A DNA stretch of 27,028 bases, taken from positions 1-27,028 of the forward strand of contig NIVC01001311.1 of NCBI GenBank assembly GCA_002269645.1, given 5' to 3'. Positions 1,138 to 26,795 of the stretch are shown here, piece after piece. Every line of letters starts with the position of its first letter. Within the stretch, counting starts at the first letter, position 1. This DNA comes from Macrostomum lignano (Eukaryota). The notes beneath the pieces are model-generated. The model searched no databases, was not told where the DNA came from, and saw nothing but the letters and a program-made list of their open reading frames with translations. A program made the translations under genes and the position numbers.

Positions 1138-4100
1138 CCCCAATCTCGAAGGTGGTATTGACAGAGCCTTGCAGGTTTGTAAACACGCACGTGTAGTTTC
1201 CCGCGTCATTTAACTTTACTGGCCTGATGGTCAGACGACTGACAATGCCGTGGGATCTGCAAACGGAATTTGACAGCATTTGCGTATTTATATTTATTTA
1301 GCCGTACTGAAAGAACGTCTTTTAACGGTAGATACTTTATACAAGTAACTCAAACATCACTATTTGCAAAGTCAGTTTTCGCTCCCACGACAAGTCAAAG
1401 GTGCTTTGAGACGAACAAAGAAGTTCTAAATATAGACAGTTCACCTACCGCTTTTTCATCTGCGCCCTCACGCGGTCGTCGAGCACCAAATTGGCGCCGT
1501 TCTTCAGCCAGCGCACGATCGGCGCCGGTTCTCCGCGAGCGCCGCAAACGAAACGCATTGAGACTTCGCGACTGCCCTTGTGCGGCGTGACGCCCTGAGG
1601 AATGGCCTTGACTATCCAGGGTGCTTTGGCTGCGGGTGGGTCGCAGTTTTTGGTTGAGAATGTTTAAATTTGCATGTACTTCTAGTGCAGATTTCCATTC
1701 TTGTTTAAAGCCATTATCAGTGGTCCCTAAACAACGTAAATGAGAGTTCTGAACTTGCTGCTGTTTATTCCAATTTTCAATTTAAGATAACAAATTCGTG
1801 TAGCAGAAAAATACAGATAAAAGTTAGCCACAACTAGCCGCAACAAATTCTTGGTACTCTAACTTTAATTACGAGCTAGCTGTCCAGCTGAAGTATTAAG
1901 AAAAATGGAATCAAGCTTGAACAGCAGCTACTGCCACGGCAGTACAGACGTTCCGCTACAATTCTGGCGCAGTTTCGACCGCCTGCAGCACTGGGCAGCG
2001 CAGGCGCCAGACAAAGAAATCATTGTCTTTAGGCAGCCAAATTCAGCTCGTCAAGCGATCAGCTTTGCCAGGTACCATCGTCTCACCGATGGCGTTGCGG
2101 CCCACTTAATTAGTGGCTACCCGAATCTTCATGTCCGAGACATCGTGCTGCTAATGGGGCCGAATTCTTTTAGCTACTGCGTAGTGGCGGCCGGTGTACA
2201 GAAGGCTGGTCTTGTCAGTCTCAAACTGCACCCCCAGACTCAAGCCAGCCTGCTGCAATCGGTCTCTAAGGCCGGCGCCAAGGCGGTGATCTACTTTGCT
2301 GACAGCGACATCTTTGAGGTTGGCGCGAATTGGCTGCAAGACTCCGCTGTGTCCATTCGAATCGACTTTGACTCGCTGTTGCGGAGCGCCCAGGAGCTAG
2401 TAGATTCCACAGAAACAGGTGAGCTGCAGGTTCTGTTGAAAGAGCGCCAAGCGCAAGTCTCCGCTGACGATAGTTGCTGCATTTATCCCACCTCGGGCAC
2501 AACCGGCCCTCCAAAACTGGTGCCGCACTCCCACTTTTCCATGGTCAACAGCGTCAGATTTCGGGCCATAAGCGCCTTGCTAACCAGTGACGACATATTT
2601 TTCACCGATCGCCCCACCGCGCACGTAGTTGGCGACTTCGGCCTTCTGATGGCCATGGTGAGCGGCCTGACTCTCGTCGTTGCTCCGACAAATACTTTCG
2701 CTGGGGACAGATGCTCTAAAAATGCCAACTGGCTGCTGGACATGCTGACCGAGGAGCGAGTGACTAGCGGCGACTTCTTTGGTTACCTGGTGCACGACAT
2801 GCTAAATAAGGCCTGTCGCGAGCCGCCCAAAACTCTTCGCAGCGCCCTAATTGCCGGCTCAATGACTACAAGCCAGCAGATGGGCAAGGCGATGACGCTG
2901 TTGCCTGGCATAGTGAATTATTACGGCACTACTGAAGCTAATATCATCACCGCCCCATGCCCGCCTTGGGGTCCGGTGGATGACCGACAGGCCAGGCGGG
3001 ACACAGTGGGCAGGCCTTGCCATGCACATGGAGTTGCTGGTCACGGATCCCAGCAATCGAGATGCTATTCCGCTGCCCCTGGGTAGCACCGGCGAAATTT
3101 GGGCCCGAGGCTTCTCAGTGACGCGAGGCTACATCGATGATCTGGAGAAGACTCGCGAGGCCATCACAGAGACCGGATGGTATCGGACTGGCGACCTCGG
3201 CTATATCGACGCCAACAGTCGCTTGACAGTCACAGGCCGGATCAAGGATCTCATCATCCGGGCTGCGGTGAACATTTCCCCCATCACCGTGGAAGAAGTT
3301 CTACGCACCCACCCAGACGTGCTTGAAGTTCTAGTGCTCGGCGTGCCAGACGAGCGACTCGGCGAGGAGGTTGCGGCCTGCGTTGTGCTCCGACCGGAGA
3401 GTCAGGAAAGACAGCTGCGGTCCGAGCGGGAAACTGCACTCAAGCTGGCCAGGTGGTGCCTGAGTCAGGGACTGGCGGAAAGTCGCGACGGCCTGCCGAC
3501 TGCTCCGAGGTACTGGGCCATACTTGCCGACTTTCCGACAAGCCGCATTGGCAAGGTTGTACGCTCCGAAGTCCGGGAGCAAGTGGCTCTCAGTAAAGGC
3601 TTCATTGACGGTCTCGAATTTCTTAGAAAACACTAAGAGTTGAAATATCCTTCGAGTTCAATGCGGATACTGATTCGAAAATTTTCAGTAGCTATTTCAG
3701 GCACTTACGCTTGTACATCATAAACTAAAGAAAAATGATTGCATACCCTATGAGCCGAACTAAAAATAGCACTGCGTAAGAGACGCCCACGGCATTGCCA
3801 ATAATGGCGAAAATAATTTTGGAACTAAGCAGTTTTGTCAATATGAAAGTATACTGCTATTATTCGATCTTCCTGTTAATGTTTAGACACTATTGAAACC
3901 ATAAAAACAAAATGGGATACCAGCAGAGTTTGTCTGATTTTGTAAAGCCCTATATTTACGATGAAAACCAAATAACTCCATACGACGTCGTTACGGCTAC
4001 GGCTAAAAAGAGGCTATAGGCTTGCACCATAAAACTGTTGAGCCGGTGCAAATTGCCTCTCAACTAAACAAAAGAATTCTAGAATCGGTTTAAAAATAGT

Positions 4101-4958
4101 TTTCAACAGCGAAAATCGTCAGTCAGCCATCTTGTGTGCCCACGCCACCCACCTTAGTTTGCTTTCTACCTGACTCTATGTCTATGCGTGCTCCACAGTA
4201 GGAAAAAATATGCTATTGTAGTAGGAGGCAGCGTCTGGCACAAAATCCAACCATAAAGCCCCACTTTCCGACTTCAAACTAGCCATATTATTTATTCATC
4301 GTCTCAAAGTAATCAGTGACAGTAAAATTTAAGCAAACTCAGCAAACCAGTGCATTATGTAATACTCGCATGAAAATGGATTTTGGCTCTTACGACATCG
4401 GTTTCGACGTCCACAGCTGACTCGGTCGAACTTGCGCAACCTCCTGGAGCGGAACTTTATCGGCAGGAAACTGTGCTTAAAGTATGTCGGGTCCAGCGTC
4501 GGCTTCAGGAAGAAGATGTAGCCCTTGTCGTTGCTGCGGAGTCGGCTAGGCGTGCACTGCTGTCTCTGTCGAGATCGCTGCCGTCTTGAAAGTGCGCCGC
4601 TGAACTCTCCCACCGTGATGCGACTGCCATTGCTGATTCGTAGCCTGGGACCAGATTTGGAGCCTCCAATTTTCAGCACCGAGTGGACCACAATGGTTAG
4701 ATTGAATCGATGAGAGGCGCTTGCTGATTCAATGATCTGCCAATTGAGAGCCCGCAGCACCAATTTCGACTGCAGCCACTTGGACTGGATGTCGTGAAAC
4801 TGACTGCCGCACTCCATCTGACCATCAGCCTCTCCGAATGCTGTTTGATGCAGACTGCGCCATTTGCGGCGACTGGCATTCGCCGAAGTGAAGCAAAGCA
4901 CGACGAGCACAATGAACAGCACTGCAGCTAGGCGGTGCATGCCGTTACAGAATTGCAT
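1138..4958 (-). CDS. Neuregulin/vein-like secreted protein (signal peptide + NRG type II/NRG2-like N-terminal domain + Ig I-set domain); 3' end not resolved in the window
   Basis: Exons 4958-4394 (ATG at 4958, or 4940; donor C|gtaaga, phase 1), 1629-1449 (acceptor cccgcag|, donor CG|gtaggt, phase 2) and 1256-1138 (acceptor tttgcag|, donor G|gtaagg, phase 1) join in frame. Signal peptide LAAVLFIVLVVLCFTSANA. GYIFFLKPTLDPTYFKHSFLPI resembles the NRG2 N-domain motif RYIFFLEPTEQPLVFKTAFAPL (from memory). Ig core FVCGARGEPAPIVRWLKNG...SRLTIRPVKLNDAGNYTCVFTNLQG. Confidence 0.8.
1905..3636 (+). CDS. ACSF2-like AMP-binding acyl-CoA ligase (ANL superfamily), intronless, one apparent +1 frameshift near 3015-3021 (about 576 aa if corrected)
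   Basis: ORFs 1905-3086 and 2980-3636 are consecutive halves. Motifs: N-terminal SYCHGSTDVPL, P-loop YPTSGTTGPPK, YYGTTE, TVGRP then (next frame) HMELLVTDP, GEIWARG, WYRTGDLGYID, GRIKDLIIR, GVPDERLGEEVAACV, C-terminal GK. Could be a pseudogene if the indel is real. Confidence 0.88.
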
Positions 4959-7900
4959 TTTGGTAGACCGGTGCAACACTAGCCAAGTTAATCAGTAAGC
5001 GCTGTAGGTAAACTGTTGGATTTTCACAAACAATGCAGGCATTATATGTCCCTTTTAATCCTCGTTAATAAGTGAGGCGGAGGGGAGGTGCGCGGACGAC
5101 CCACCACCGGGTTGGACTTGAGCGGGAAAGAACCGCGCTACCAGAAGCGAATGGCGACAGACAATGGAGCTTGGGGTGGGCTTAAACAGTCTGTGCGGCT
5201 TAAAATAAGCACTGTGCAGAGTTGAGTTGCACCTGGCGCCTCTACTTCCAGCGTCTACTTTAGGCCTGCCTGTCGTTTCAACAACGCCGTGAAGCGTGGG
5301 AACGTCGAATTATGGTTGGCTGATTGTCTCCCTTCGGGTAGGCAATCTTGACAGCTGCAGTGTTTGAGATGGCTTTTGGCTATGTACAGTAGTTACCGTG
5401 CGTAGGCGGGAGCGAAATCTTGAGAGCAGGAAGAGAGTCCTTCGGGTAAAGCAAGCCAGGAGTGATACAGAAAGAGAAAAGATGGAGCTCCTGCTGTGTG
5501 CTTTGCGCTGACTGTCTGAGAAAGTCTTGGGCCTACAATTTCGTTGGGGCCGCCAACTTAGAGCGAATTTTTCTATGCAGTGTCAGATTTAACAGTAATA
5601 AGGCAACCATGGAGACTAAGAGAAGAAGGGATTCGAACGCTGTCTGCTGTAGAGTTCTGGTGCGAGGGCGTGAGGCGCGAGTATGAAAAGCTTGCGTTTG
5701 CGTGGGCACGGCCACAATGAAGCAAGCTGGCCAGCGAATGAGATCGGAGGGGGGCAGAGGTGGGTGAGAGAAAGAACGGGACTGATGAAGAGAGAGAGAG
5801 AGCTAGGTAGTGGCCATTCCATGAACTTCCCGATAAATAATTTTTTCTTCAAAAATGCATGAAATTTCCGGGTGAGTAGTGAAAGTGATGCTGCATTCAG
5901 GTTCAAGCAGCTGAGGTCACTATACGAGTATGTCCTGTGAAATCAGGCAGATATGAAAAAAATCAACGCTCACAAGTCTAATAGTGTTCTTTTGACAAGA
6001 GGCCTAGTGGAAAGCAGTGTGCAGCTGGAAGAGTGATTTTGCGTCATCTCGCTCGTTTCAATTCAAATATTTCTGTTCTCGGGTTTAGAAACATTGCTGC
6101 TCAAAGTGTTTGGAGCGCGAAAAGGCTCAGGTTCTGAAGTGTCTGCAGTGAGTTGCAGGCGAGTCTGCAAAGTAGTTAAAGCAACGACGTAATACCCTTT
6201 CCCTGCTACTCATGCTCAATCCCAGCCAACGGCCAGTTAAAACTTGTCGGAGTGCTTCTGCGGGGGTTGTTCCACAGATTCTTAAGTGCTACAGCAACAA
6301 GACGCGCAGAGCAACGTTGCCGACTAGTCTGGTTGAGCTGGCTGAAGAAGTGAAAGCAAAGCCGCCCGTGCTCAACCAGTCGATTTTTCTGTATCGATGG
6401 GTGTTCGTCCCAATCTTTGGACTGGCCTTTAGTCCGCGCGGTTGTCGCAGAAATGGCTGAAAATAATTGAATCGGCACGAGCAAGCATGCAGAGGGACCA
6501 GCTCTGTATTTGCCAGACTCCGCAAACCCAGACTCCAGACTCAGTGAGAGCTGCTACAGCCTTGGAATTAAATACAAAAGTGCCATTCCGAAAACTGTCT
6601 TCGATTACTCTCGCCTCAACGCCCTGGCACTTCTGGCTCGAATATTGACTTGATCAATTTTCCAGTTGCTTCCAGTTAAAAAAATGTCTTGCTTAAGTTG
6701 CCGAAAATGGAAAACAAACTTACCATGAGAATTGGAGTAGCACATGCTATGATATGATAAGTGCCGAGCTGAAATCACAGCATACTGATGACACTGATGA
6801 GGTGCAGAGATGTCAGTCCAATCAAAATATTTAGACGCAGTAGCAAGTTTTAATGCTAAAAATTCATAGCCATCTATATAAGTAGTTACTATATATAAGT
6901 AGTTATATATATAGTCGTTCTGTCCGCAGAAATTGTAGGGAAAAATGATCGAGCAGTGTTTGGACAGAGCTCTCTTGAGAATTGACACTTCGGTTGGATT
7001 CAAGCGTTATTATCAATAAAAACTGCGAAAGATGTGTGTTAAAGTGCACTAGCAGTACTAGTATGGGTGAAGTCAAACACTATAGCCGTCAATGCCAAGA
7101 CTTATTTGATTTCACTGTTACTTCTTAAATGCACAAATTCTAAAAAATCGTTCCTATCAACATAGCCTTTTTATAGTAGGCTTTGAATTCCACACGAGGC
7201 AGTAACTATCAGTACTAACAGTAGTACTAACAGTAGTAAATATCTGTTATATAGTACACTAGTACACAACTAAAAGAAAAATGACGAAGAAACACAAAAT
7301 CCAGTAAATCTTGCGTTTAACAATTTCCCTCTGGTGCAAGTTAGAAATCAATTTAATTTACCTAATTTTAACCAGAAAAGTTTAGAAGTTAGCACTGTTC
7401 GATTCATTTCTTCTAAAAAATCTTTCGTCGGTTGATTGATGAACCTCAGTTAAACAAGAGCTAAAATTTTCAGCTCAAAGTTTATTGATTACACCGGCGC
7501 AGTGCGCGGGCCAATACAGTTAATAATTAATTTAGCTACCTATAGCATTATTGCGCCAGTTTCCAGTCGCCAATTTACCGCCTAAACCGCCAGAGGCGCT
7601 CTCGTGTTTTTGTAGCATTTCTATAATTGGATCTTTAGGGTAGCAGAGAACTTCTGAGCTTGGAGCTTTGACAAGCCCGGTAAGGGACCTCTGGCTAAAG
7701 ACCTGGACTGTAGCCACGCAGGGCCTACAGAAGAACCTTTAACAATCGGGAGTATGAAGAATGTCTGATGTCTTGGGTGGCTTTCCAATCCAGGCAATCA
7801 AGAGGTCTATGTAGTCGGCTAAAGTCCGACGGAATGAAACAACGGTTTGAGTTGAGAGAGGGGGAGACCGGGACAGTGGAAGAGGAACGGGGAAAGGAAC

Positions 7901-8813: not shown

Positions 8814-11800
8814 ATGCCTGGCTACACTTATTTCTTCGTGGACAGCGTGCCGAAGCAGTGCATCTGCCCGATCTGCAAGCTGCCGATGCAGGCTCCAGTA
8901 GTTTTGACCTCCTGTCAGCACGTGTTCTGCGACTCCTGTCTACGACCGAGGCATAGACGAGGTCACAGGTGAGTAGATTTATTGTGCTCTGCTGTCTAGA
9001 TCATGTAGAGACGATAGCAGGAAAATTTCCTATTATATTTCAGTCACAATCGTGCATCACTGGACCTGGACTCGAGCCTGATGTGCCCATTGGATGAACA
9101 ACGAGTGGATAGTAGGAATGTAAGACTGAGAATCATATCGCTGTTCAAAGTGAGCAACAATCGCCCCTTAGACTGCCTATAGGAATTGCCCCATGAGTAA
9201 CCAAGAATCGCCCCAGAGTGACAGAGTGACCTGAAATCGTTCTTTAGAGACCTATAATCGCCTCTCTGAGTTACCAGGAATTACCTCTCAATGTCTTTTT
9301 AATTAGTCAAATGTTTGCGCCGACAGTAACCGCCAAAGACACTCTATTAGGTAATTTCCAATCAATTCACCAGGTGAAAAGCAGCGTTGAACTGAGCAAC
9401 CAAATTGAAAACTGCATGGTTCGATGTCCACAGGAGCCTCAAGGCTGTCGCTGGGTTGACATCGTCCGAAATGTGCCGGTGAGTAACGCATGATATGGTG
9501 AGAGAGTGGTGAATGTCCAAGGACGGTGCCTTCATGACATTTTCCCCTGATCATTCAGGATTCAGTTATCACAATCAGTGTTATCACCATTCAAAAAGCA
9601 GCAAAAGGTACATACAATTTCAACAGCAGCAAGAAACACTGCCATAAAGGTAAAAAAGAGAGCAGCGTCACTTTCGAAGGGACCTTCGGAGCCTACAACA
9701 TGAAAAACTGATACTTTATAGAAATTCTTTGGAGTCCTCGGGTCTTTCTTCATGTGCCATTGGAAATGCATGGTAAATATCTAAAGGTACTCATATCGTA
9801 CACAGATAACTACAGATAGGAAGTCGTCATTGAAGCGTCAAGCCTACGTCTATGAAAAAATGGAGTCTTTTGTCTCGGATTAATTCCTTTATTGCTGCAC
9901 TCACCTGATTGAGTTGAGATACTTGCTATTTTGATCTGAGCGTGGGTAGCTTATTGTCAGCGATGAATTTCATGCAATTTATTGCGCATCAGAAATGCAG
10001 AACCATTCCCATATTGCATTGCTCACGTCCAAACTGCATTCACGACTCCCTGTTCCCAGAGCCCACATGCGGCCTCTCCTCTCTATCCATCCGTCCCTCG
10101 GGTCCTTTGAAACTTCACAATGGCAATCATCCCATCTCTCCCCTCTCCCCTCTATTCCCTCTTATTTCCTCTCTCATCTTCTTTACACTGAGTGTTTCAA
10201 TCACTTCTCCTTATTCTTTCTTAATATCCAGTGGAATTCAACTTGAATCCATCTTCAACGAGTCCAAATGTTTGCTAAGCAGTTCTTACGAACAACCCCA
10301 ACCTGTATTTATGATAATTCTATGGACAAAATCGCGGCTAAAAGTTACTGTATACGATCTTATTATTCAGTTCTCTTTACTCTCTTGCCTCCTCTCTTTG
10401 CATGTACATGCTACATACACTCGCTCCATTGTGTAGCACCGTGTGTACGCTTAATTATCTTGCCTTCACTTCGTCTCTTCAAGTGTCTGTTTCTCTTCCC
10501 TTTGCTTGTGCATTTACTACCCAACATTTTTATTTCGTATTTTTTGCAGCCGTGAGAATTTTAATATCCCAGAGCTAAAATCCATGAACTGCTGTGCCGA
10601 TAACAAATCCTGATGCTTGATTATGGCGCCAATAAATACTTGACTCTGGTGCAATGACTCTGGCGCCAATAGTTGTGTGGACTCTGGCGCCAATAGTTGT
10701 TTGACTCTGGCGCCAATAGTTGTTTGACTCTGGCGCCAATAGTTGTTTGGACTCTGGCGCCAATAGTTGTTTGACTCTGGCGCCAATAGTTGTTTGGACT
10801 CTGGCGCCAATAGTTGTTTGACTCTGGCGCCAATAGTTGTTTGACTCTGGCGCCAATAGTTGTTTGACTCTGGCGCCAATAGTTGTTTGACTCTGGCGCC
10901 AATAGTTGTTTGACTCTGGCGCCAATAGTTGTTTGACTCTGGCGCCAATAGTTGTTTGACTCTGGCGCCAATAGTTGTTTGACTTTTCCAACATGCTTTT
11001 GCTCCAAAAGTTTTTTTTTGTTTTTTGAGGCAAACCTCGTAGGCATAAAGTCAAACTCATGAAACCCGACACACCCCAGAGCGCTCCTATTCAAACATCA
11101 ATATTTCCCAACCTAAACGTGCAACCCGAGGACGCAAACTAATCCTCGGTCTGGAACTGTAGTCACGATTGCAATCGTATTCACTCTGCTCAAACCGGCT
11201 TGCAGAGCCACCTGGAGACTTGCCGCTACGTGGCGGTGCTCTGCCCCCAGAACTGCGGGGACATGGTGTGCAGAGCGTTTCTCAAGGAACACGTCGATCA
11301 TGCCTGCTCAAGGAGGCGACGCCTGTGTCAGTTCTGTAGGAACAGCTTCAGCGCTGAGGAATACCCAGTGAGGATGCCTGTTATAAGATCGTGAATCTCA
11401 AATCTCAGATCCTGAATCCCAAATCTCAGATCCTGAATCTCAAATCTCAGATCCTGAATCCAAATCTCAGATCCTGAATCCCAAATCTCAGATCCTGAAT
11501 CCCAAATCTCAGATCCTGAATCTCAAATCTCAGATCCTGAATCCAAATCTCAGATCCTGAATCTCAAATCTCAGATCCTGAATCCCAAATCTCAGATCCT
11601 GAATCCCAAATCTCAGATCCTGAATCCTGAATCTAAAATTCTCTCCGAAACGCAAAAAATCTCTCATTGGAATGCCAACTTTCAATCGAATCCCAAGTCT
11701 GAAGTAGTATAGTTAGTATAGCCCGCACAGGTAACCAGCCCTACACCTTGTAAAAAACTGGCTTTCAGAAGCACGAAGGCACCTGTCCAGACGAGCAGGT

Positions 11801-13945
11801 GTGGTGCGAGAACAAGTGCGGCCTGCGGATTCCGCGGAGGAAGCTGGCCAGGCACGCTGAGCACGATTGCGTCAAGCGGGAGGTCGGCTGCAGCTTCTGC
11901 CGGAAGCGGTTCCTGTTCGACACGCTGCAGGTTGGTTTGTGATGGCTGCTGCTGTGGTCCTGGGTTCGAACTTCAGTCACACCTACATAAGCTATTCATA
12001 AATTAGCAATTAAAGTACTCGATCCTGCTCGAGGAAACCAAATCCTGACAAAAAAGTCATAGAAGAAAAATAGTTTATCCCAACCTCACAGATATCATAG
12101 ATCCCATCCCTAAAGCCATAGATCCCATCCCTAAAGCCATAGATCCCATCCCTAAAACCATAGATCCCATCCCTAAAGCCATAGATCCAATCTCTAAAGC
12201 AATGGATCTCACCCCTAAAGCCATAGATCCCATCTCTAAAGCAATGGATCTCACCCCTAAAGCCATAGATCCCATTCCTAAAGCCGTAGATCCCAACCCT
12301 AAAGCCATAGATCCCATCTCTAAAACCATAGTTCCCATCTCTAAAGTCATAGATCCCATTTCTAAAGCCATAGATCTCATCCCTAAAGCCATAGAGCTCA
12401 GTATAAAGATATTCCCAATACTAATAATCCTTCAACCCAAATTGCCAACACCCACAGACTCATATTCAGCAGTGCACACTGAAAGGTGTGACCACTCCAG
12501 TTTCTGGTCAGCAAAGCCACAGTAGCAATCATCAGCAGCATCAGCAACAGCAGCAGCCGCAGTACAACACTTCGACATCAACGTCAAATTCCTCATCAAA
12601 CGACGCGGCCATTCTCAGCGCAGTGGGCAAGACCTCCTCAGGAACTGGCACCAGTCCCTTGGCGGTGACCCCGGAGTCCACGCTGGACAAGCCCGACAGC
12701 GGCGGGGTGAACCCGCAGTTCAACAGCCAGCGAAGGCAGCAGCCGGAAGCCTCAGCCGAGGCACCGCCACCCGTGCCGAGGAGGGCGGCCTCCGCTGAAT
12801 GTCTTGACGGTGGCAGAGTCCGAGGAGCGCCTCCGATCGACTGTCCGTTGAAATGGTGCGGCTGCCAGTTCAAGGTGAGAGGCTTGCATAATCCTAAGGG
12901 ATTAGTGATAGAGATTTAAAAGTGTGAGGATCTAGTGCTACGATGTACACTAACACAGGTCTAGATGGTTCCGGATCAAGAGGTGCAGAACTGAGCCTCT
13001 GATCCAGAGGTTCAGTAACTGCTAGTTTGCAGGTGGTTTCGACTACTACGCAATACTCGTACGTAAGGATTCGTATGAGACACACGCCCACATGGACTTT
13101 TGCACGGAATGGAACCAAGGGTCTAGAATTTGGATCGAGAGAAAAGATACCTAGAGATTCGAGATTGAAGAGAATGTCCCTCTCGACAATGCATTTGAAA
13201 GCGAATTTCTAACTTTTGCGCAAATTGTACACAATGTTGAAGTGTTTAGTCCTCCTCGATTCATTCTATTGCGATTCCCCCAACCCCCCCCCCCCCGAAC
13301 TTTAAGGGCGATCGAGCCTCCGTCGATCGGCACCAGTGCGACCCGGCGGCGTCGGCGCATCACGTGACCTTGCTGGCCGAACTGGCTCGAGCCCAGCGCC
13401 GGGAGTTGGACTCGTTGAAGCGCCAGCTGCGTCACCTGCCGCTGGTGCACTCTGGTCGCCTGGTCTGGCGGGTTGACAATTACGCCGAGAAGCTGGCAGA
13501 CTCGACTCCCAACCGGGAGCTGGAGTTCTGCAGCGTGCCGTTCTACACTGGCAGACCGGGCTATCGGCTGCAGGCCTCCGCCTTTCTCAACGGAAACGGC
13601 AGCGGCGCAGGTCGCTACCTGTCGCTCTACGTGAAGCTGCTACCTGGGGAGTTCGATCCCATTCTGGACTGGCCGTTCGTTCGACCGATTCGAATGCGAC
13701 TGCTGGATCAGAGGGACGGGTCGGCTGGATCGCGGCGTCACCTGGAGGAGAGCTTCACCCCGGATCCCAGCTGGCGGCATTTCAAACGGCCAGGCAGGGA
13801 TGCTTCGGCCGCGTTCGGTTTTGGATTTCCGAAGTTCGCGGCACACGAACTGCTGCGGCCAGAGGGCGGCTCGGATGAGTGCTGCTACCTGCGCGACAAT
13901 GTCATCTTCCTGGAGATCGAGGTTCTGCCTGATGCGGCAGAGTGA
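8814..13945 (+). CDS. TRAF4: TNF receptor-associated factor 4 orthologue (C3HC3D RING, TRAF zinc fingers, coiled coil, MATH/TRAF-C), about 567 aa
   Basis: Exons 8814-8968, 9044-9119, 9374-9478, 11206-11367, 11769-11930, 12470-12874, 13307-13945; all GT-AG and phase-compatible (1704 nt). MPGY start as in TRAF4; RING CPIC..C.H.FC..C..CPLD; fingers CPQNCG, CQFC, CENKCG, CSFC; MATH GYRLQASAFLNGNGSGAGRYLSLY, FDPILDWPF, FTPDPSWRHFKRP, FGFGFPKF. Exon layout matches my recollection of human TRAF4. Confidence 0.93.
10095..10160 (+). repeat. Dispersed repeat fragment, copy 1
   Basis: 28-nt identity GGTCCTTTGAAACTTCACAATGGCAATC at 10101-10128 with 23977-24004, followed by a pyrimidine-rich tract. Confidence 0.75.
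10623..10984. repeat. 23-nt minisatellite (GACTCTGGCGCCAATAGTTGTTT), 14 near-perfect copies plus degenerate flanks, in TRAF4 intron 3
   Basis: Unit starts at 10657, 10680, 10703, 10726, ... 10958; a few 24-nt variants; no spacers. Confidence 0.97.
11386..11633. repeat. 21-nt minisatellite (AGATCCTGAATCYCAAATCTC), about 11-12 copies, in TRAF4 intron 4
   Basis: Direct tandem copies starting about 19 nt after the exon 4 donor. Confidence 0.96.
12092..12395. repeat. 21-nt minisatellite (CATAGATCCCATCYCTAAAGC), about 14 copies, in TRAF4 intron 5
   Basis: Direct tandem copies; they explain the spurious heptapeptide-repeat ORFs 12075-12392 and 12202-12525. Confidence 0.95.
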
Positions 13946-14019: not shown

Positions 14020-14335
14020 ATAGAGACACTAACACCCAATGTAGAGCCCCCTGACACCCAATGTATATGTAGATCCTCCTGACACCCAACGCAGAGCCCC
14101 CTGACACCCAATGTAGAGCCTCCTGACACCTGATGTAGATCAGAGCCCCTGGCACCTGATGTAGAGCCCCTTGACCCCTGATGTAGAGCCCCCTGACACC
14201 TGATGTAGAGCCCCTGGCACCTGATGTACATGCAGAGTCCCTGACACCCACTTTAGAGTACCTTACACTCACTGTAGAGTACCTGACATTCAATGTAGAG
14301 TACCTGACACCAGATGCAGGGCACGTGACATCCAC
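14020..14335. repeat. Degenerate minisatellite of about 22 nt (ATGTAGAGCCCCCTGACACCYR), about 14 copies, just 3' of the TRAF4 stop
   Basis: Recurrent tgtagagccc...tgacacc units with indels. Confidence 0.9.
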
Positions 14336-15025: not shown

Positions 15026-15710
15026 GCTGCCTCAATTGCATCTGCCTCAGCTTCATCTTTCTCAGCTTCATCTGTCTCAGCTGCATCTGTCTCAGCTTCA
15101 TCTGCCTCAGCTTCATCTGCCTCAAGTGCATCTGCCTCAGCTTCATCTGCCTCAAGTGCATCTGCCTCAGCTTCATCTGTCTCAGCTGCATCTGTCTCAG
15201 CTTCATCTGCTTCAGCTGCATCTGTCTCAGCTGCATCTGTCTCAGCTTCATCTGCCTCAGCTGCATCTGCTTTGGTATAGTCGAGTCGAGCTGCATCTGC
15301 CTCAGCTTCATCTGCCTCAGCTTCATCTTTCTCAGCTTCATCTGTCTCAGCTGCATCTGTCTCAGCTTTATCTGTCTCAGCTTCATCTGTCTCAGCTTCA
15401 TCTGCTTTGGTATAGTCGAGTCGAGCTGCATCTGCCTCAGCTTCATCTGCCTCAGCTTCATCTGTCTCAGCTTCATCTGCCTCAGCTGCATCTGCCTCAG
15501 CTGCATCTGCTTTGGTATAGTCCAGTCGAGCTGCATCTGCCTCAGCTTCATCTGCCTCAGCTTCATCTTTCTCAGCTTCATCTGTCTCAGCTGCATCTGT
15601 CTCAGCTTTATCTGTCTCAGCTTCATCTGTCTCAGCTTCATCTGCCTCAGCTGCATCTGCCTCAGCTGCATCTGCTTTGGTATAGTCCAGTCGAGCTGCA
15701 TCTGCCTCAT
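15026..15710. repeat. 15-nt minisatellite (CTCAGCTKCATCTGY), about 45 unit lengths, with higher-order structure
   Basis: Tandem 15-mers interrupted four times by a 30-nt variant containing TTTGGTATAGTC(G/C)AGTCGAG (about 15271, 15406, 15511, 15676). Confidence 0.97.
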
Positions 15711-16267: not shown

Positions 16268-17894
16268 ATGACTGCTAACGATACGGTTACCGAACTGGAG
16301 ACTGCTTTTGAGCACCTACCAGCTCTGATCGACTCTGATCCCATTGTTTTCTATCCCTACGTGAGTCTGACTTCCCTCGCCATGGTCATTGGGTTTTTAG
16401 GCAATATCGCCATTTTTATTACCCTGTTGGCTCGGCCCGATGTGCAGAAGGTTGGCCGGGAGTTCATGGCCAACATGTGCTTGGCTGATCTGTGCGTCAC
16501 TGGACTGGCCGATCCTCTGTGCATCGTTGGTGAGTTGCTGTTGCTATTGAACAGTGTATGTATAGGGTCAGAATTAACTGGCTGTCGTGTCCTATCTGCT
16601 CGAATCTCAGTTGATCTCAGTCTTAGGTGGGCCAACGATACACCATCCCTGGAGTCTTGGGTCTTAGGTGGGCCAACGATACACCATCCCTGGCGTCTTG
16701 GGTCTTAGGTGGGCCAACGATACACCATCCCTGGCGTCTTGGGTCTTAGGCGGGTCAATGATGCATCGCTGGAGTCTTAGGGGTTTGATGGGTCAATGGT
16801 ACATTGCTGGAGGCCTGTATTTTAGGTGGGTCAATGATGCATCACTGGAGTCTTGAGTCTTAGGCGGGTCAATGATGCATCGCTGGAGTCGTGGGTCTTA
16901 GGCTATCCAAGACACGTCACTGGAGCTAGTTTTGGGTCTTTTGTGGGTCAAGGATACATCCATCAAGTCTTAAGTCTGGTAGGTCCAAGAAGACACGTCG
17001 CTGGAGTCACAATAACACACTGACATAGTACCTGAGACGCAGTCGAAACGAAGCTACTTGAATGTAAAAAGCGTCTCCGTTTCCCCTCCAGCTGCCATTA
17101 AAGGCGAAAAATATCTGACTGAGAGACCTGAACTTTGCACTCTGGTCGCTTCGCTGTGCCTGACAGCCTGCTTCTGCGCCTTCTTCAGTCTGGGCTGCAT
17201 CACCGCATCCAGAACGGTATTCATCTGTCACAACCGAATGTACAAGAGCCTATTCAGCCGACGAAAGGCCATTGTGCAGTGCTGCCTGTGCTGGGTGCTG
17301 AGCCTGACAGCCGAGGCTGGTAACTTTCTCGGTTGGGGCGGCCATTTCTACGATCGGAAAAGCGAGAGCTGCGCTTGGCAGAGAACGGCGTCCTCGTCGT
17401 ACACATTCTTTGTCGGCGTCGGTCTGATCTCTTTCCCGCTGACTCTGATGCTGGCCGCTAATATAAAAGTCCTAGTCAAGGTTCACTCTACAAAGCTTCG
17501 CCTTCTCGCCGCCGTCACGTCTCATCTGGACAAGCCAACGCCTCGACCAAGCGCTGTCTGGCGAGAGACAGCACGAGCTTGCCGAACATTGCTGGCTATG
17601 ATCGTAGCCTTCTGCGTCTGCTGGATACCCTACACTGTTGTCATTCTGGTGGACGTCAGCAACACTGTGGTTCCGCCTCGGGTTCACCTGTTCGTAACTT
17701 GGCTGGCTCACCTGCATTCGGCTGTCATCATCTTGGTGCACCTGAGCAATCGGCAAATCCGGCTGGCAGTGATCCAAACCATCTTCTGCCAGCGCGACAA
17801 AGGATCGCCTAAGGCCAACACCGCGACTACCAAGTGCACAAACAACAGCAAAGCTACTAACCAGACCACCTCTACCACCGATAACAAGATCTGA
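16268..17894 (+). CDS. Class A (rhodopsin-family) GPCR, melatonin-receptor-like invertebrate family, about 354 aa
   Basis: Exon 1 16268-16529 (donor G|gtgagt) and exon 2 17092-17894 (acceptor cccctccag|CT) join in phase 1. N-terminal NDT sequon, TM1 GN, TM2 LADL, TM3 LCTLVASLCLTACFC, FICHNRMY, TM4 W, TM5 P, TM6 CWIPY; seven hydrophobic segments. Confidence 0.88.
16612..17010. repeat. 41-nt minisatellite (GTCTTAGGTGGGCCAACGATACACCATCCCTGGAGTCTTGG), about 9 copies, progressively diverged, in the GPCR intron
   Basis: TCTTAGG recurs at 16621, 16662, 16703 and 16744 (period 41); later copies degenerate. Confidence 0.92.
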
Positions 17895-21700: not shown

Positions 21701-24700
21701 GCGTCTGCGTTTCAGCAGCGACCACGCTCCGTGTGTGCGTCTCGGGTATCGGCTTGAGGCCGGAACCGCTGCCGCAATGGGCAGAGTAAATGTTATTGGA
21801 GACTCCGGCCTGTAGCACCGAGAAAGCTTCTTGTGGCGACTCTAGCGGGCTATTTTGTCGGCGGCTCGGTTGATGATGGTGTTGCTGACTGCCTTGATGC
21901 TGACGGAAGCCCGTGGAATTTACAGTCACTTGAGAATTTCGGCTAGAGGACGTGGCCGGTCGGCCCTCGCGCAGCACCATGGCGCGAACTCGCAAGCCGT
22001 CAACGTTGTGCGACGAATGCTCGGTAAAGTCGAACTGCTGCTGAGCCACCCGGTGCACACGTTCGGACACTAGGATCTGTCCGGGGCCGGCCGCTGAGGC
22101 CAGCACTTTCGAAATAGATGCTGCCTGGCCCCAGATGTCGAAAACTGGCCTGGAGCCGCCGACCACGCCGCAGAATCCGGGTCCGAGGTCGATGCCAACC
22201 CGCATACGGATGCGGTCCTCGTACAGTGTGGCGTTGAGTTCAGCCACCCTGCGGCGCATCAGCTGGGCCAGCTGGACCAGACCGGTGAGGTGGAACAGCT
22301 TGCTGGCCGGGTTGTCCTGCAGTTGCGGATTCATGCCAACAGCTACTACATAGTTTTCCCCAACTGTGCGCACTTTGACGAGCTCCTGGTGTCGGTCGGC
22401 ACGTTGAATTAGCTCGTCCAGCTCGCAGATGACGTCATTGAGCACCCGGATGCTCTCCTGGACAAGCAGGGGAGCCTCAGTGCCAGGAGCTGGCTGCCAA
22501 TCCGGTAGATTGGCCCACAGGATGCCCAGCAGCTGGTACTCTTGGGCGTACAGATCCTGTGTTGGCGAGAGACGTTAGGGGAGGGCATCAAAAGAGCACA
22601 CAAAGGCGCACGGAATGCAGGCAAAAATCCACAGGATGTACAGACGGCCCTGACTTTCTCATTGGCAGGCATTTCTCACTCTGTGACCTGGGGCTTTGGC
22701 CCTCATGGGCGATTTTTCGTGCCAAACGTCAGGTAAATTTTTTCACGAGCCTCAAATTTGTGTGGCCCAGGTACTTTGGTGCCTGGAGTCAAACGCCTTA
22801 ACCCCTGAGCTTCTCTGTCAGTAAAAACGGTTTTCTAGCTTTTTGTAAATTCCTACGCACTCCACATCCCTCTGGCTCCCTGCTGCACAGGTCGAAACTC
22901 GAAGGCTTTCCCGGCTTCAGCCCAGCATACTCCCAACTGGGGAACCGAAGTTATGACTGCTACCGAAACCGCGCGCGTCAAACTCCCGAAACCCCCAGCC
23001 ATAGTGAAGTTTTCTCCTCTCCAGCTAGCTCTGATGACTCACCCAAGCTCGAATGCGGGCACGCGAGGCACGCGCAGATATGCATATATTGATGAGGAAT
23101 CGGGCAAGTTTTTCCTATAGTTCCGCGTCGCTTTTTTCGGCTTCATTCCCTGCGCAACAACCGGCAAACCCCACCGGCACTCGGTGGCAGGGGCAGGCTT
23201 TGGCTTTGGCATGCCCCATCCATCAAGGCATTCGGTAAGGTTTGCTGGGCCAGAGTGGATGAGGGGAGGGCATTTCGGGCCTCTAGTGCGACGCTTCGTC
23301 GTTGCGCGTCGGAGTTATGCTTATAATAATTCGTGGCCTGGCAACTGACCTCGAGTCTGTGTAACCCTCTCTATCTGTGCCTCTTATTCTATCAATATAC
23401 ACTACATGCCAAGTTCCCTATGTAAATATGAATAAGCTGTCTATGAATAAATTTGTCAGAAAAAGTCGAGCTCCTATTCTTCTGGTGAATTGCACTTGAC
23501 GTTACACTCGAATAGGATATTTCTATCATTGCTATCAGCTGATTTAATAGATTAGATTAATTAAATAAGTGAAACCCGCTACCAGCTGTACTCACCACAG
23601 GATTTCGATAAGTCGTATCCGTGAAATGCAGCGCAACGTGCTGCGGCAGCAGATTTTTCAGCAAACAGCAACTGGCCTCCTTCACCAGGAACATGTCGTG
23701 CTGGTTCTCGGCGGACTGAAAAAATATTCGTTAAAAATGAAAGAGAATGATTCGATTTGGGCTGTACGAGGGTTGTAAGTCTGCTAAGTAGAAATGTTGA
23801 TTTTTCTATTAAAAAGAAAATCTTTGCAAAATCCTCAATTAAAACACAACAGAATTGTGAGAGCTTCCGCTACCCCATACTATTATTGAATTTACCACAG
23901 GAGAAGCAAATATGTGATTCATTTGCTATTCAGGATCGGCAAACTCCGGCCCACAAAGCCTTTCTATCCGGCCCTCGGTCCTTTGAAACTTCACAATGGC
24001 AATCTGGGCCGCTCAGGGTTTGTGTCTCTTCTCAGCTCCCTACTCTCTAATCCCCTCCCTCTCCTCTCCTATTCCATCTTCTAATGGGCAGATGTGCAAC
24101 CGACAGCTCGAGCCCGAGTAAATCTGAAGGTTGCGTACGGCTGTTCAGTCCAAAGATCCCCTAGAATTACTCCAGCTAATGCTGGCACCCATTTTACAGC
24201 TGGGTGATCTGAAGCAATGCAGAGTTAAATGCCTTGCTCAAGAAGTCAAGGACTATAGATTGTTACGAGTGGGTCGAGAATGAAACCCCGGACCTTTCAG
24301 TCTCAATTCCGACGCTCTAGCCACTAGGCTAAAACTCTAGGCTATAATGGAAGCTCACCTGCGACTTCCACTGGAACTCCTGTCGCTGGGCGAACTCGTG
24401 AAACCGAGAGTGCACGAAGATCAAGATGGAGAAAGCGGTCAGGCAGACGAGGCCCCAGACAAAGGTTGGCACAGGGCCAGCTGACATGTCGTGAGCGGAG
24501 GCGGCCAGACCGGACAGACTCGCCAGCCCTCTGACATCGGAGTCAACCAGCGAGAACAGCGGACGATGCGTGACAGCTACAGTCAGGCCGAAGGTGGTGG
24601 ACACGGCCACGAGCAGGAACAGCTTGATGAAGGAGGGCAGCGATGCGAACACAGCCACCAAGATCAGGCAGAGGGTGCCAGACAGGTAAATGAAGTCCGG

Positions 24701-26795
24701 CAGCGGGCACTGCAGCTCCAGTGAGTTGTCCGAGTCCTGCAGAATCGGGCCGTACGTGGTCCTGTTGCCCACTGTCGAACGGCAGCAGAACTGAAAACCG
24801 ATGCCAAATAATCAATAAATTCGGTTGAAATCCTAAAACCACCTCCAGCCCAAGCCCGACAGCACTAAACGCCAGCTCAGCTCACCACATTGGCCTGCGA
24901 TACGGCGTACACAAACAGAACCGAAGTAATGATGACAACCACTCGTATGACGAATGAGCTCTGAATGTTGAATTCCAGGCACTGTCGATTGGAAATTGGT
25001 TGTTTTCACAATTACTGCATTGTGTACAGTGAATTTAGATTCTTTCACGCGTGACTTAATCACCAATGAAATTGTTCAATTAATCTCTGCATAGTTGATG
25101 GGGCATAAATTTCTACAGGTATAGATTAAAGTAACTGCCATTCAATATCTTATAGCCCAGTGGTCCAACTCGGCGCTCTGATGTGCCAGCGGCCCAGGCT
25201 CGATTCAAGTGCAGTCACATTAATTTAAGGCAGAATTGGAATCTCGGCTTGGCTCTGCTCGTGCAATTAACACCTTTGAAGGCCAACCCTAAGGACAGTG
25301 AAGTGTACATGACTAACGATAAATAAAGTTAGGGCCGCTGTACACTCCTGTGTGAGTGTGTGCCTGTGCGTATGACTGCGTACGCATCCGCGCGCTTGTG
25401 TGACATAACAAGCCATCCGTTCAAGGCCTTCAAATCTGGGACAAGATAGGTGCATGGAGCGGTTCATTGGAGTCCAACTCAAACTTGATTTGAATTTGCT
25501 CACCTTAAGCCTGGCAGCCAGCAACACCATGAGCATCATGCCAATCCAGGTGAACGCAATCATGAATAGCAGCAATAGCAGCATGGTTCTAAAATGGGGA
25601 AGGGTTCATTAATAATTAATTAAAACAGCTTTTAACAGCATCTCTACATTTTCTCCGCGAAGAGCTCACCTGGGCAGCACTGAAGCCTGAAGGCTGGCGC
25701 TAATTAGCAAAATGAATAGGGCCGCTAGCATTGCCGCTCCGAATGTGTGATCCTCCTGTCTGTGGTACTGGAATTGTTTGTTTGAGTTTTCAGTTGCAAT
25801 GTATTTAGCGAATAAATTCTAAGCAAAATGAATGACATCTTTTCGTCGTTTTTTTGTACTGTTTAGGGCGAGACCGATTCAAACTATTATTTTACTCGGT
25901 TGTTATGCAGTTGCTGTGGGGTTGCTAAGCGGTTGCTATACTATTTTAAAGCAATGTAGAGACTAGGTTGTATCTATCTGATTGATTACTGTTTAGTTAC
26001 AACGCGGTTGGTACGCAGTTGCTCTGCGGTTGCCATACGGTTGCTATGCGATTGCTATGCGGTTGCTATGCGATTGCTATGCGGTTGCTATGCGATTGCT
26101 ATGCGGTTGCTATGCGGTTGCTATATTGTTGCTATGTGGTTGCTATGCAGTTGCCATACGGTTGCTATGCGGTTGCGATGCGGTTGCGATGCGGTTGCGA
26201 TGCGGTTGCTATGCTGTTGCTTTGAGGTTGCTGAGATAGCTGTTTCTATCTCATTACTGTTTACGAGTTACGTACATGTAGTTACTATGCGGTTGGTACA
26301 CGGTTTCTATGCGGTTGTTATGCTGATTGCTTTTTCATTACGTTTTCCTCGCTTGCTGTACAGTTGCTACACGGTTGCTACGCCGATGCTTTTTGATTGC
26401 TATGCAGTCGCTGTGCGGTTGCTATGCTATTTCTACGCAGTTGCCATGCGATTTGCTAAGCTGTTGTCAAGACTGAATTTCGAATTCTTAAACAAAAGCT
26501 ATAACCAAACTTTCGGTTCGAGTTCAACTTAAGCACTCCTGCTCACCTCATTCTCTTTAGCCTGAGTTGAGAACTTCAGCGTCACCGGGTTCATGCTGGT
26601 TCGGCAGCGCCTCAGCACGGTTGTTGAGGCGCCGCTAGCAGCTACTTGACCACCGCAGCCTGAGAGGTCGACGAAGTCTTGACGCTGCCCAGGCGGGTGA
26701 GTTCGGTGCCTTTGAACGAAGCCGCGTGCCCGTTCCCAATGAGAGGACTGGAGCTGCCACCGGAACTCCTGCTGCGAGGGTGGTTCGAATATGTA
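18790..26795 (-). CDS. Rutabaga/ADCY1-like transmembrane adenylyl cyclase, 3' part only (end of C1b, M2 helices, degenerate C2 domain, about 1,100-aa low-complexity tail); the 5' part lies beyond the right edge
   Basis: Exons 26795(uncertain 5' edge)-26547, 25767-25670, 25588-25504, 24981-24886, 24790-24359, 23715-23596, 22556-20354, 20296-18790. LQASVLPRTMLLLLLFMIAFTWIGMMLMVLLAARLKCLEFNIQSSFVIR...QANVFCC closely resembles rutabaga M2 as I recall it. Also LLKNLLPQHVA, LYAQEY, RVLNDVICELDEL, RMRVGIDLGP, FDIWG. The tail needs three single-base frame corrections (about 21245, 20645, 20281). Confidence 0.85.
23950..24080 (+). repeat. Dispersed repeat fragment, copy 2
   Basis: Same 28-nt core at 23977-24004, similar upstream cccaca...ctatcc and a downstream C/T-rich tail; family not identified. 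Confidence 0.75.
24080..24340 (-). mobile_element. tRNA-derived SINE with a CORE-like central domain
   Basis: Minus strand reads GCCTAGTGGCTAGAGCGTCGG (A-box-like), GGGGTTTCATTCTC (degenerate B box), then TCTTGAGCAAGGCATTTAAC...CCCAGCTGTAAAATGGGTGCC (24243-24186), resembling the CORE consensus CCTTGGGCAAGTCACTTAAC...CTGTAAAATGGG. Ends are approximate. Confidence 0.7.
25905..26460. repeat. 11-nt minisatellite (GCGGTTGCTAT), core about 26005-26225 with degenerate flanks, in a cyclase intron
   Basis: Tandem gcggttgctat/gcgattgctat units; they explain the repetitive ORFs at 26008-26532. Confidence 0.93.

Follow-up and report, generated by a model that had tools for sequence, protein, structure and literature searches.

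Pseudoenzymes are common as a class and usually serve as allosteric partners, scaffolds or competitors. To our knowledge, membrane adenylyl cyclases have been treated as uniformly catalytic. We analysed a stretch of 27,028 nucleotides from the flatworm Macrostomum lignano (contig NIVC01001311.1 of assembly GCA_002269645.1, positions 1 to 27,028 of the forward strand; this whole stretch is called the window below), whose minus strand carries the 3' two-thirds of a transmembrane adenylyl cyclase (tmAC) gene. An earlier reading made from the letters alone, here called the sequence-only reading, had proposed that this gene encodes a candidate pseudo-adenylyl cyclase, in which the C2 domain has lost its catalytic residues while the membrane domain stays rutabaga-like. 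Our analysis suggests that the protein is probably an AC1/rutabaga-derived tmAC that turned non-catalytic or very weak while staying under selection.

The nearest described systems are the invertebrate AC type 1-like proteins and Drosophila rutabaga, which are Ca2+/calmodulin-responsive tmACs belonging to group I together with AC8 and AC3. With these the M. lignano protein shares motifs of the second membrane domain, M2 (LPRT.LLL.LF..AF.WI, QVNVF.C and a juxtamembrane F.W..Q), the linker LLxNLLPxHVAxHF and a long low-complexity tail with a distal SAYESEYDNY; the best solved C2 is likewise that of a group member, AC8. It departs from them in a C2 that is only ~30% identical (relatives ~69%) and lacks K938, N1025, R1029 and K1065 (AC2 numbering throughout), and in a tail that ends shortly after the SEYDNY block.

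Degenerate sites are also found in heterodimeric class III cyclases, namely in the forskolin site of tmACs, in soluble guanylyl cyclase (sGC) alpha/beta and in chytrid NeoR/RGC, where a half-site of cyclase fold, minus its catalytic residues, is retained for a regulatory purpose; such dead sites modulate the live one allosterically, examples being the forskolin site and the chytrid NeoR/RGC heterodimers (PMC12264004). All of these keep one competent site, whereas the M. lignano protein loses the residues of the normally competent one. Its other site likewise has no Asp/Asp pair from C2, and the protein is predicted to be left without any complete site. The twelve-transmembrane cyclases of protists (Paramecium and Plasmodium guanylyl cyclases, Dictyostelium GCA), in which the roles of C1 and C2 are transposed, similarly combine a tmAC-like topology with a C2 devoid of the K/D(E/C)-N-R set. 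Their C2, however, has two metal-binding Asp where that of M. lignano has Asn and Glu, and there is no phylogenetic affinity, the M2 and tail of the M. lignano protein being animal AC1-like. In keeping fold and surface while losing catalytic residues, the protein finally resembles pseudokinases, pseudophosphatases and degenerate GGDEF/EAL domains.

The scaffolding, dimerisation and G-protein-sequestering functions of tmACs are hard to separate from the production of cyclic AMP (cAMP). If our reading is true, the M. lignano gene would be a natural separation-of-function allele of a full-length tmAC with membrane domain, fold and tail kept, and the first animal tmAC shown to be converted to a non-enzymatic role, in a tractable regenerating flatworm amenable to RNA interference and transgenesis. 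The alpha2' helix, the Gly/Pro scaffold, M2 and the distal SEYDNY motif would then stand out as the parts of an AC1-type protein that selection still preserves when catalysis has been given up.

Catalytic residues of the C2 domain

The C2 domain lies in an open reading frame (ORF) of 401 residues and comprises 199 of them, reading DLYAQEYQ...KVRTVGENY...FDIWGQAASISKVLASAAGPGQILVSE...HNVDGL. It matches Pfam PF00211 with E=2.2e-25 and 89.8 bits (cut-off 21.9) over profile positions 2-172 of 183, and the closest solved structure found by HMMER is AC8 (PDB 8buz, E=2e-34), followed by AC5 and AC9. Since the C2 stretch of AC8 scores 83.9 bits and the C1 stretch 35.9, the window domain is of C2 type. 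A C1-type or guanylyl-cyclase-type domain was considered as well and rejected, as the domain scores as C2, its base position holds D instead of C/S, and the other position holds R instead of E. An AlphaFold2 (AF2) model built from a 15-row alignment shows the canonical order of strands and helices, with a predicted local distance difference test score of 77 and a predicted template-modelling score of 0.74, and Foldseek aligns this model to structures of AC5, AC9 and AC2-C2 (e.g. 1cjt_B) with probability 1.00 and template-modelling scores of 0.74-0.80. The class III cyclase C2 fold is thus predicted to be kept.

Within this fold, the residues on which catalysis depends are largely replaced. The sequence-only reading had stated that the catalytic contributions of C2 are lost and that the Asp alone survives; its motifs and codon coordinates are exact (Arg CGC at 22370-22368, Ser TCT at 22118-22116, Val GTG at 22106-22104), and the loss itself holds in both HMMER and MAFFT alignments, where four of the five residues are gone. 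In full, the window C2 carries K938R, N1025S, R1029V and K1065D (the Asp codon at 22001-21999), and retains D1018 (codon at 22139-22137), so that one of five canonical residues remains. The position of K1067 is taken by L; K1065 and K1067 belong to the beta7-beta8 hairpin, which is reproduced by the AF2 model. The roles of the base, ribose and phosphate residues in class III cyclases are tabulated in PMC6005667 (Table 1) and PMC3591389, and Asn and Arg are essential for catalysis according to Yan et al. 1997 (JBC 272:12342), as cited in PMC5918993. In a catalytically competent tmAC C2, K938 and D1018 contact adenine, N1025 serves the ribose and the transition state, and R1029 and K1065 hold phosphates, K1065 the gamma-phosphate; of this contribution of C2 to the single active site of a tmAC, the window domain has only D1018 left.

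These assignments come from three independent alignments, namely HMMER alignments to the solved AC8, AC5 and AC9, a query alignment of the 149 best matches other than a near-identical M. lignano entry described below, and a MAFFT alignment to 14 AC1-like C2 domains, all of which run without gaps through the catalytic motifs. Because they concur in this way, mis-alignment was rejected as a cause. Among the 149 best matches, the alignment extends to R1029 in 146 C2 domains, and 144 of them carry the K-D-N-R set; the two exceptions change R1029 only, to C (P0090) and to K (P0127). The alignments of P0057 and P0131 show K-D-N but stop short of R1029, and both domains of P0132 carry K-D-N-R. The R-D-S-V state of M. 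lignano occurs in none of these 149 other best matches from a library of 1.84 billion proteins. As judged from the alignments, it is confirmed that the residue loss lies far outside chance.

To encode the canonical residue again, every altered codon would need at least 2 nucleotide (nt) changes, hence single-base or indel noise provides no explanation. This agrees with the earlier proposal of multi-base substitutions as opposed to indel noise, all the more as the reading frame is unbroken. The erosion reaches beyond the individual residues: the catalytic helix, GNTVNVASRM in its canonical form and GQAASISKVL in M. lignano, shows the lowest conservation within the domain, while in the relatives it is among the most conserved parts.

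Divergence and probable maintenance of the gene

When the 1.84 billion representative proteins were searched exhaustively with HMMER, a single near-identical match was obtained, UniRef100_A0A1I8GG26 (P0001), an M. lignano protein of 1468 residues named "adenylate cyclase". This independently deposited model is 100% identical to the window C2 across all 199 residues and is colinear with window positions 26887-19267 (tblastn). Its N-terminus, RILLSKSTYLELADADLRVDPG, corresponds to the last strands of C1 and is absent from the window; together with the order of the domains in P0001, this indicates the usual C1-M2-C2 arrangement with C1 beyond the right-hand edge of the window. The protein is therefore already deposited, under an automatic name only, and no description of M. 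lignano cyclases or of animal pseudo-tmACs was found in the searchable literature. Besides P0001, the nearest C2 match among the 1.84 billion representatives is only ~31% identical, and no closer orthologue was found.

The membrane half allows a clear placement. Among the subset of matches to the M2 of P0001 (E 1e-43 to 1e-32) only AC type-1-like or Ca-calmodulin-responsive (rutabaga) cyclases are found, and their hosts are molluscs, a nemertean, an annelid, chelicerates, a crustacean and insects; P0004, a fly rutabaga-type protein, is one of them. The neighbour-joining tree of M2 groups the M. lignano protein with spiralian AC1-like proteins. By its M2 and distal tail, the gene is thus placed in the invertebrate AC1/rutabaga (Ca-calmodulin-responsive) group, and the membrane domain is rutabaga-like, as had been claimed from the letters alone.

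The C2 domain of M. lignano shares 30.0% identity with 14 AC1-like proteins, which are 68.6% identical to one another (minimum 47%), whereas the corresponding values for M2 are 34.7% and 45.6%. The neighbour-joining terminal branch amounts to 0.49 for C2 against a mean of 0.12 (4 times), and to 0.36 for M2 against a mean of 0.20 (1.8 times). Normally the catalytic domain is better conserved than the membrane domain; in the M. lignano protein this ranking is inverted, and only 37 of 93 canonical near-invariant C2 columns are retained. As such, the sequence-only reading needs to be amended: the catalytic C2 residues are indeed lost, but this is no clean loss on a conserved background, as the whole C2 is remodelled (30% versus 69%) and M2 is somewhat diverged, too.

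Nevertheless, the gene bears the marks of maintenance that the earlier reading had attributed to it, in its open frame, codon periodicity, splice sites, structure-preserving substitutions, fold prediction and distal tail motif. The M2, linker and C2 exons span ~470 codons with zero stops and zero frameshifts. The three codon positions differ in G+C content in C2 (.73/.39/.73) and in the M2 exon (.56/.45/.80), against flat values for the introns. When neutral substitutions were simulated from the C2 exon to a comparable amino-acid divergence, 1.9% of the outcomes were stop-free, with indels uncounted. At the 93 near-invariant columns, Gly/Pro residues are kept at 10 of 12 positions and hydrophobic character at 40 of 47; where a hydrophobic residue has been replaced, the substitute is still hydrophobic in 25 of 32 cases (p=1.5e-4 versus the domain's own composition). 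The gene has introns, and in M2, linker and C2 we found none of the stops, frameshifts, or losses of splice sites or codon structure that characterise a processed or decaying pseudogene. Altogether, the open frame, periodicity, simulations, Gly/Pro and hydrophobicity patterns, fold and tail motif make long-term pseudogene decay unlikely, as far as can be read from one gene in one species, whose only other locus version is identical in C2.

The tail that follows C2 extends this picture. Its proximal part is nearly flat in G+C content by codon position (.63/.56/.60). The last of the distal frames, of 500 residues, belongs to the same gene and contains a conserved block, LPPELQRYILPGCISSSSLATSVEYPSDPSMQYSAYESEYDNY (18951-18823, minus strand), followed by the C-terminal ...KSTVV and a stop. 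This block (…ISSSSLA…SDPSMQY-SAYESEYDNY) is colinear near the C-termini of AC1-like proteins (Owenia E=4e-6, Tubulanus E=5e-5), is also visible in AC1-like proteins of molluscs and arthropods, and lies ~1000 codons downstream. We know of no earlier description of the SAYESEYDNY block. As a side observation, the ...KSTVV end resembles the ...TDV ends of the relatives and may be a PDZ-type ligand.

A proposed non-catalytic role and its rivals

We propose that the C1-C2 pseudo-heterodimer would still form but with an incomplete canonical ATP site, in which case little or no cAMP would be made by the protein alone; from the residues lost we infer an absence of cAMP synthesis. The protein could instead act through the parts it retains, that is, membrane targeting, the C1-C2 and G-protein-facing surfaces, and the long tail with its conserved motif and S/T-x-V-type end. 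Among the better-kept stretches of C2 is the alpha2' helix, ESIRVLNDVICELDELI, a region which in mammalian C2 forms part of the Gs-alpha groove. Possible binding partners of the pseudo-cyclase would be, for example, Gs-alpha, G-beta-gamma or, by heterodimerisation, active cyclases, and the tail motif might serve as an anchor in a signalling complex. The protein might be a regulator or an anchoring subunit, or might pair with active cyclases as a dimer partner; the earlier suggestions of a scaffold, a G-protein sink or a dominant-negative partner are reasonable and stand as proposals only. Tentatively, Macrostomum, and perhaps other macrostomorphs, may maintain a true pseudo-adenylyl cyclase, with twelve transmembrane helices and no complete site, as a membrane-anchored regulator.

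Several observations weigh against this interpretation. Lys150, which immediately precedes the lost Arg on its helix, might compensate in part; Arg63 is a conservative replacement of Lys938, and Arg189/Arg191 follow the lost Lys1065, so that residual or weak activity via Lys150, Arg63 and Arg189/191 is possible. C1, with its metal-binding Asp residues and R484, lies beyond the right window end, and C1b, which in this subfamily holds a calmodulin site as C2 does, mostly falls outside the window or resists alignment. No second M. lignano cyclase was present among the matches, and the gene may be a paralogue or the sole AC1-type gene. Moreover, relative to P0001 the tail has three 1-nt frame breaks, at ~21243 (A run), ~20645 (G run) and ~20378 (T run), which could mark a recently damaged (pseudogene) copy.

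The residues named above, or else a swapped asymmetry of C1 and C2, might leave the protein a still active cyclase, an explanation that we regard as improbable. What speaks for it, apart from the Lys ahead of the R1029 position and the location of C1 outside the window, is found at the C2 columns that match the metal-binding Asp of C1: these hold Asn16 (22509-22507) and Glu67 (22358-22356), unlike the 149 relatives, which mostly have Ser/Ser or Ser/Ala, and the first C2 strand, ILWANL, resembles the C1 motif ILFADI. Yet functional class III sites carry Asp/Asp at the metal positions (Table 1, PMC6005667), and these two Asp are not found in the window C2. A swapped site would need both of them, and with Asn/Glu in their place neither pseudo-symmetric site would have the standard complement, whatever C1 carries; judged from the C2 side alone, swapped asymmetry is thus unlikely. 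Furthermore, the bit scores strongly favour C2 over C1 for this domain (83.9 versus 35.9). The catalytic helix and the beta7-beta8 hairpin together hold four simultaneous non-conservative losses; given that the helix is also the most eroded part of the domain, release from catalytic constraint fits better than a re-engineered site.

The divergence of the whole C2, and not of the catalytic residues alone, would also be expected of a decaying or recently dead duplicate with C2 under relaxed selection, as the M. lignano genome is highly duplicated; the frame breaks in the tail, the stop at 21240, the weak codon periodicity of the proximal tail and the lack of an orthologue in the same state among the matches point in the same direction. 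We consider this unlikely. It takes long evolution for identity to drop from ~69% to 30%, and over that time ~470 codons have nevertheless stayed without a stop or frameshift, with canonical splice sites, strong codon periodicity and preserved Gly/Pro and hydrophobicity; other phyla still share the motif that lies ~1000 codons downstream. As to the frame breaks, the single-base differences in homopolymers are not the same in the two locus versions: the break at ~20645 is spanned in P0001 by a 38-nt "intron", and P0001 carries a frameshifted stretch of its own (residues 785-815). Since such homopolymer indels differ between the two versions, the breaks are best explained as long-read assembly error and would otherwise mean at most very recent damage to one copy. 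The same indel noise, clear as it is in the assembly's tail, might suggest that the degeneracy of C2 is an artefact of mis-assembly or mis-alignment and that the domain is in fact normal. This we hold to be extremely improbable in view of the multi-base substitutions, the unbroken frame, the three gap-free alignments and the identity of P0001 over 199 residues. A tmAC turned non-catalytic or very weak while remaining under selection is our preferred interpretation.

Exon map and neighbouring features

The exons of the cyclase gene in the window are compiled in the table. Introns next to the M2, linker and C2 exons all have GTGAG donors and AG acceptors, and a hydropathy scan of M2 gives the expected run of hydrophobic helices; splice sites and M2 helices are thus intact, in line with the sequence-only reading. 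By homology, hydrophobic segments and exon map, a six-helix M2 is followed by the linker and C2, as in a twelve-helix tmAC. The juxtamembrane VHSRFHEFAQRQEFQWKSQ is equivalent to the canonical HGRxxEWTxRLDFLWxxQ, and the linker, which reads SAENQHDMF...LLPQHVALHF...RNPV, is homologous to the canonical ...EKxxMxxLQxxNxxLLxNLLPxHVAxHF...RN. We also noted that the deposited A0A1I8GG26 model is without 19 conserved residues (VHSRFHEFAQRQEFQWKSQ, window 24359-24415, minus strand), an internal donor having been chosen; with the GTGAG donor at 24358 instead, homology to rutabaga-type proteins is restored.

Table. Parts of the M. lignano cyclase gene located in the window, listed in the direction of transcription
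Feature	Start	End	Strand	Basis and remarks
C1b/pre-M2 exons (KLTEELLKCQPSGK ...; ...MNPVTLKFSTQAKENE)	26547	26887	-	P0001 tblastn; internal boundaries approximate
M2 exon, transmembrane helix (TM) 7 (YHRQEDHTFGAAMLAALFILLISASLQASVLP)	25670	25767	-	P0001 tblastn
M2 exon, TM8 (TMLLLLLFMIAFTWIGMMLMVLLAARLK)	25504	25588	-	P0001 tblastn
M2 exon, TM9 (CLEFNIQSSFVIRVVVIITSVLFVYAVSQANV)	24886	24981	-	P0001 tblastn
M2 exon: extracellular loop, TM10-TM12, juxtamembrane VHSRFHEFAQRQEFQWKSQ	24359	24790	-	GT-AG flanks
Linker exon, TM12 to C2 (SAENQHDMFLVKEASCCLLKNLLPQHVALHFTDTTYRNPV)	23596	23715	-	Acceptor ttttcag, donor gtgagt
C2 domain, start of last large coding exon	21960	22556	-	PF00211; exon acceptor aacacag, then GATCTG
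Proximal low-complexity tail, in the C2 frame	21240	21959	-	Ends at TGA 21242-21240; 1-nt difference from P0001
Distal tail, three long open frames joined to C2 by P0001	18790	21246	-	Frames 21246-20644, 20620-20366 and 20292-18790; tblastn

On the plus strand of the cyclase region only a chance ORF of 80 residues was found, and an Rfam scan of the window gave no matches. The remainder of the window holds several other features. An acyl-CoA synthetase-type gene at 1905-3636 (plus strand; Pfam AMP-binding E=3e-42 plus AMP-binding_C) is split between two ORFs whose frames differ and which overlap around 2980-3086, which suggests a short intron or a frameshift. An ORF of 216 residues at 4329-4979 (minus strand) has a sub-threshold match to NRG2_N (24.6 bits, cut-off 27) that is probably not meaningful. 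Minisatellites are located at 10655-10984 (23 bp x14), 11386-11634 (21 bp x12), 12096-12395 (21 bp x14), 14032-14311 (22/70 bp), 15027-15675 (15 bp x43) and 26004-26232 (11 bp x21), the last of them inside a cyclase intron, and give long spurious ORFs on both strands. A TRAF/meprin MATH domain exon at 13364-13945 (plus strand, E=2e-32) probably belongs to a TRAF-like gene. A rhodopsin-family G-protein-coupled receptor (7tm_1, E=2e-22) extends across two ORFs at 16268-17894 (plus strand), head-to-tail beside the point where the minus-strand cyclase gene ends. The first of these ORFs overlaps at its end, as does the gap between the two, with a 38-bp x 7 tandem repeat (16620-16902).

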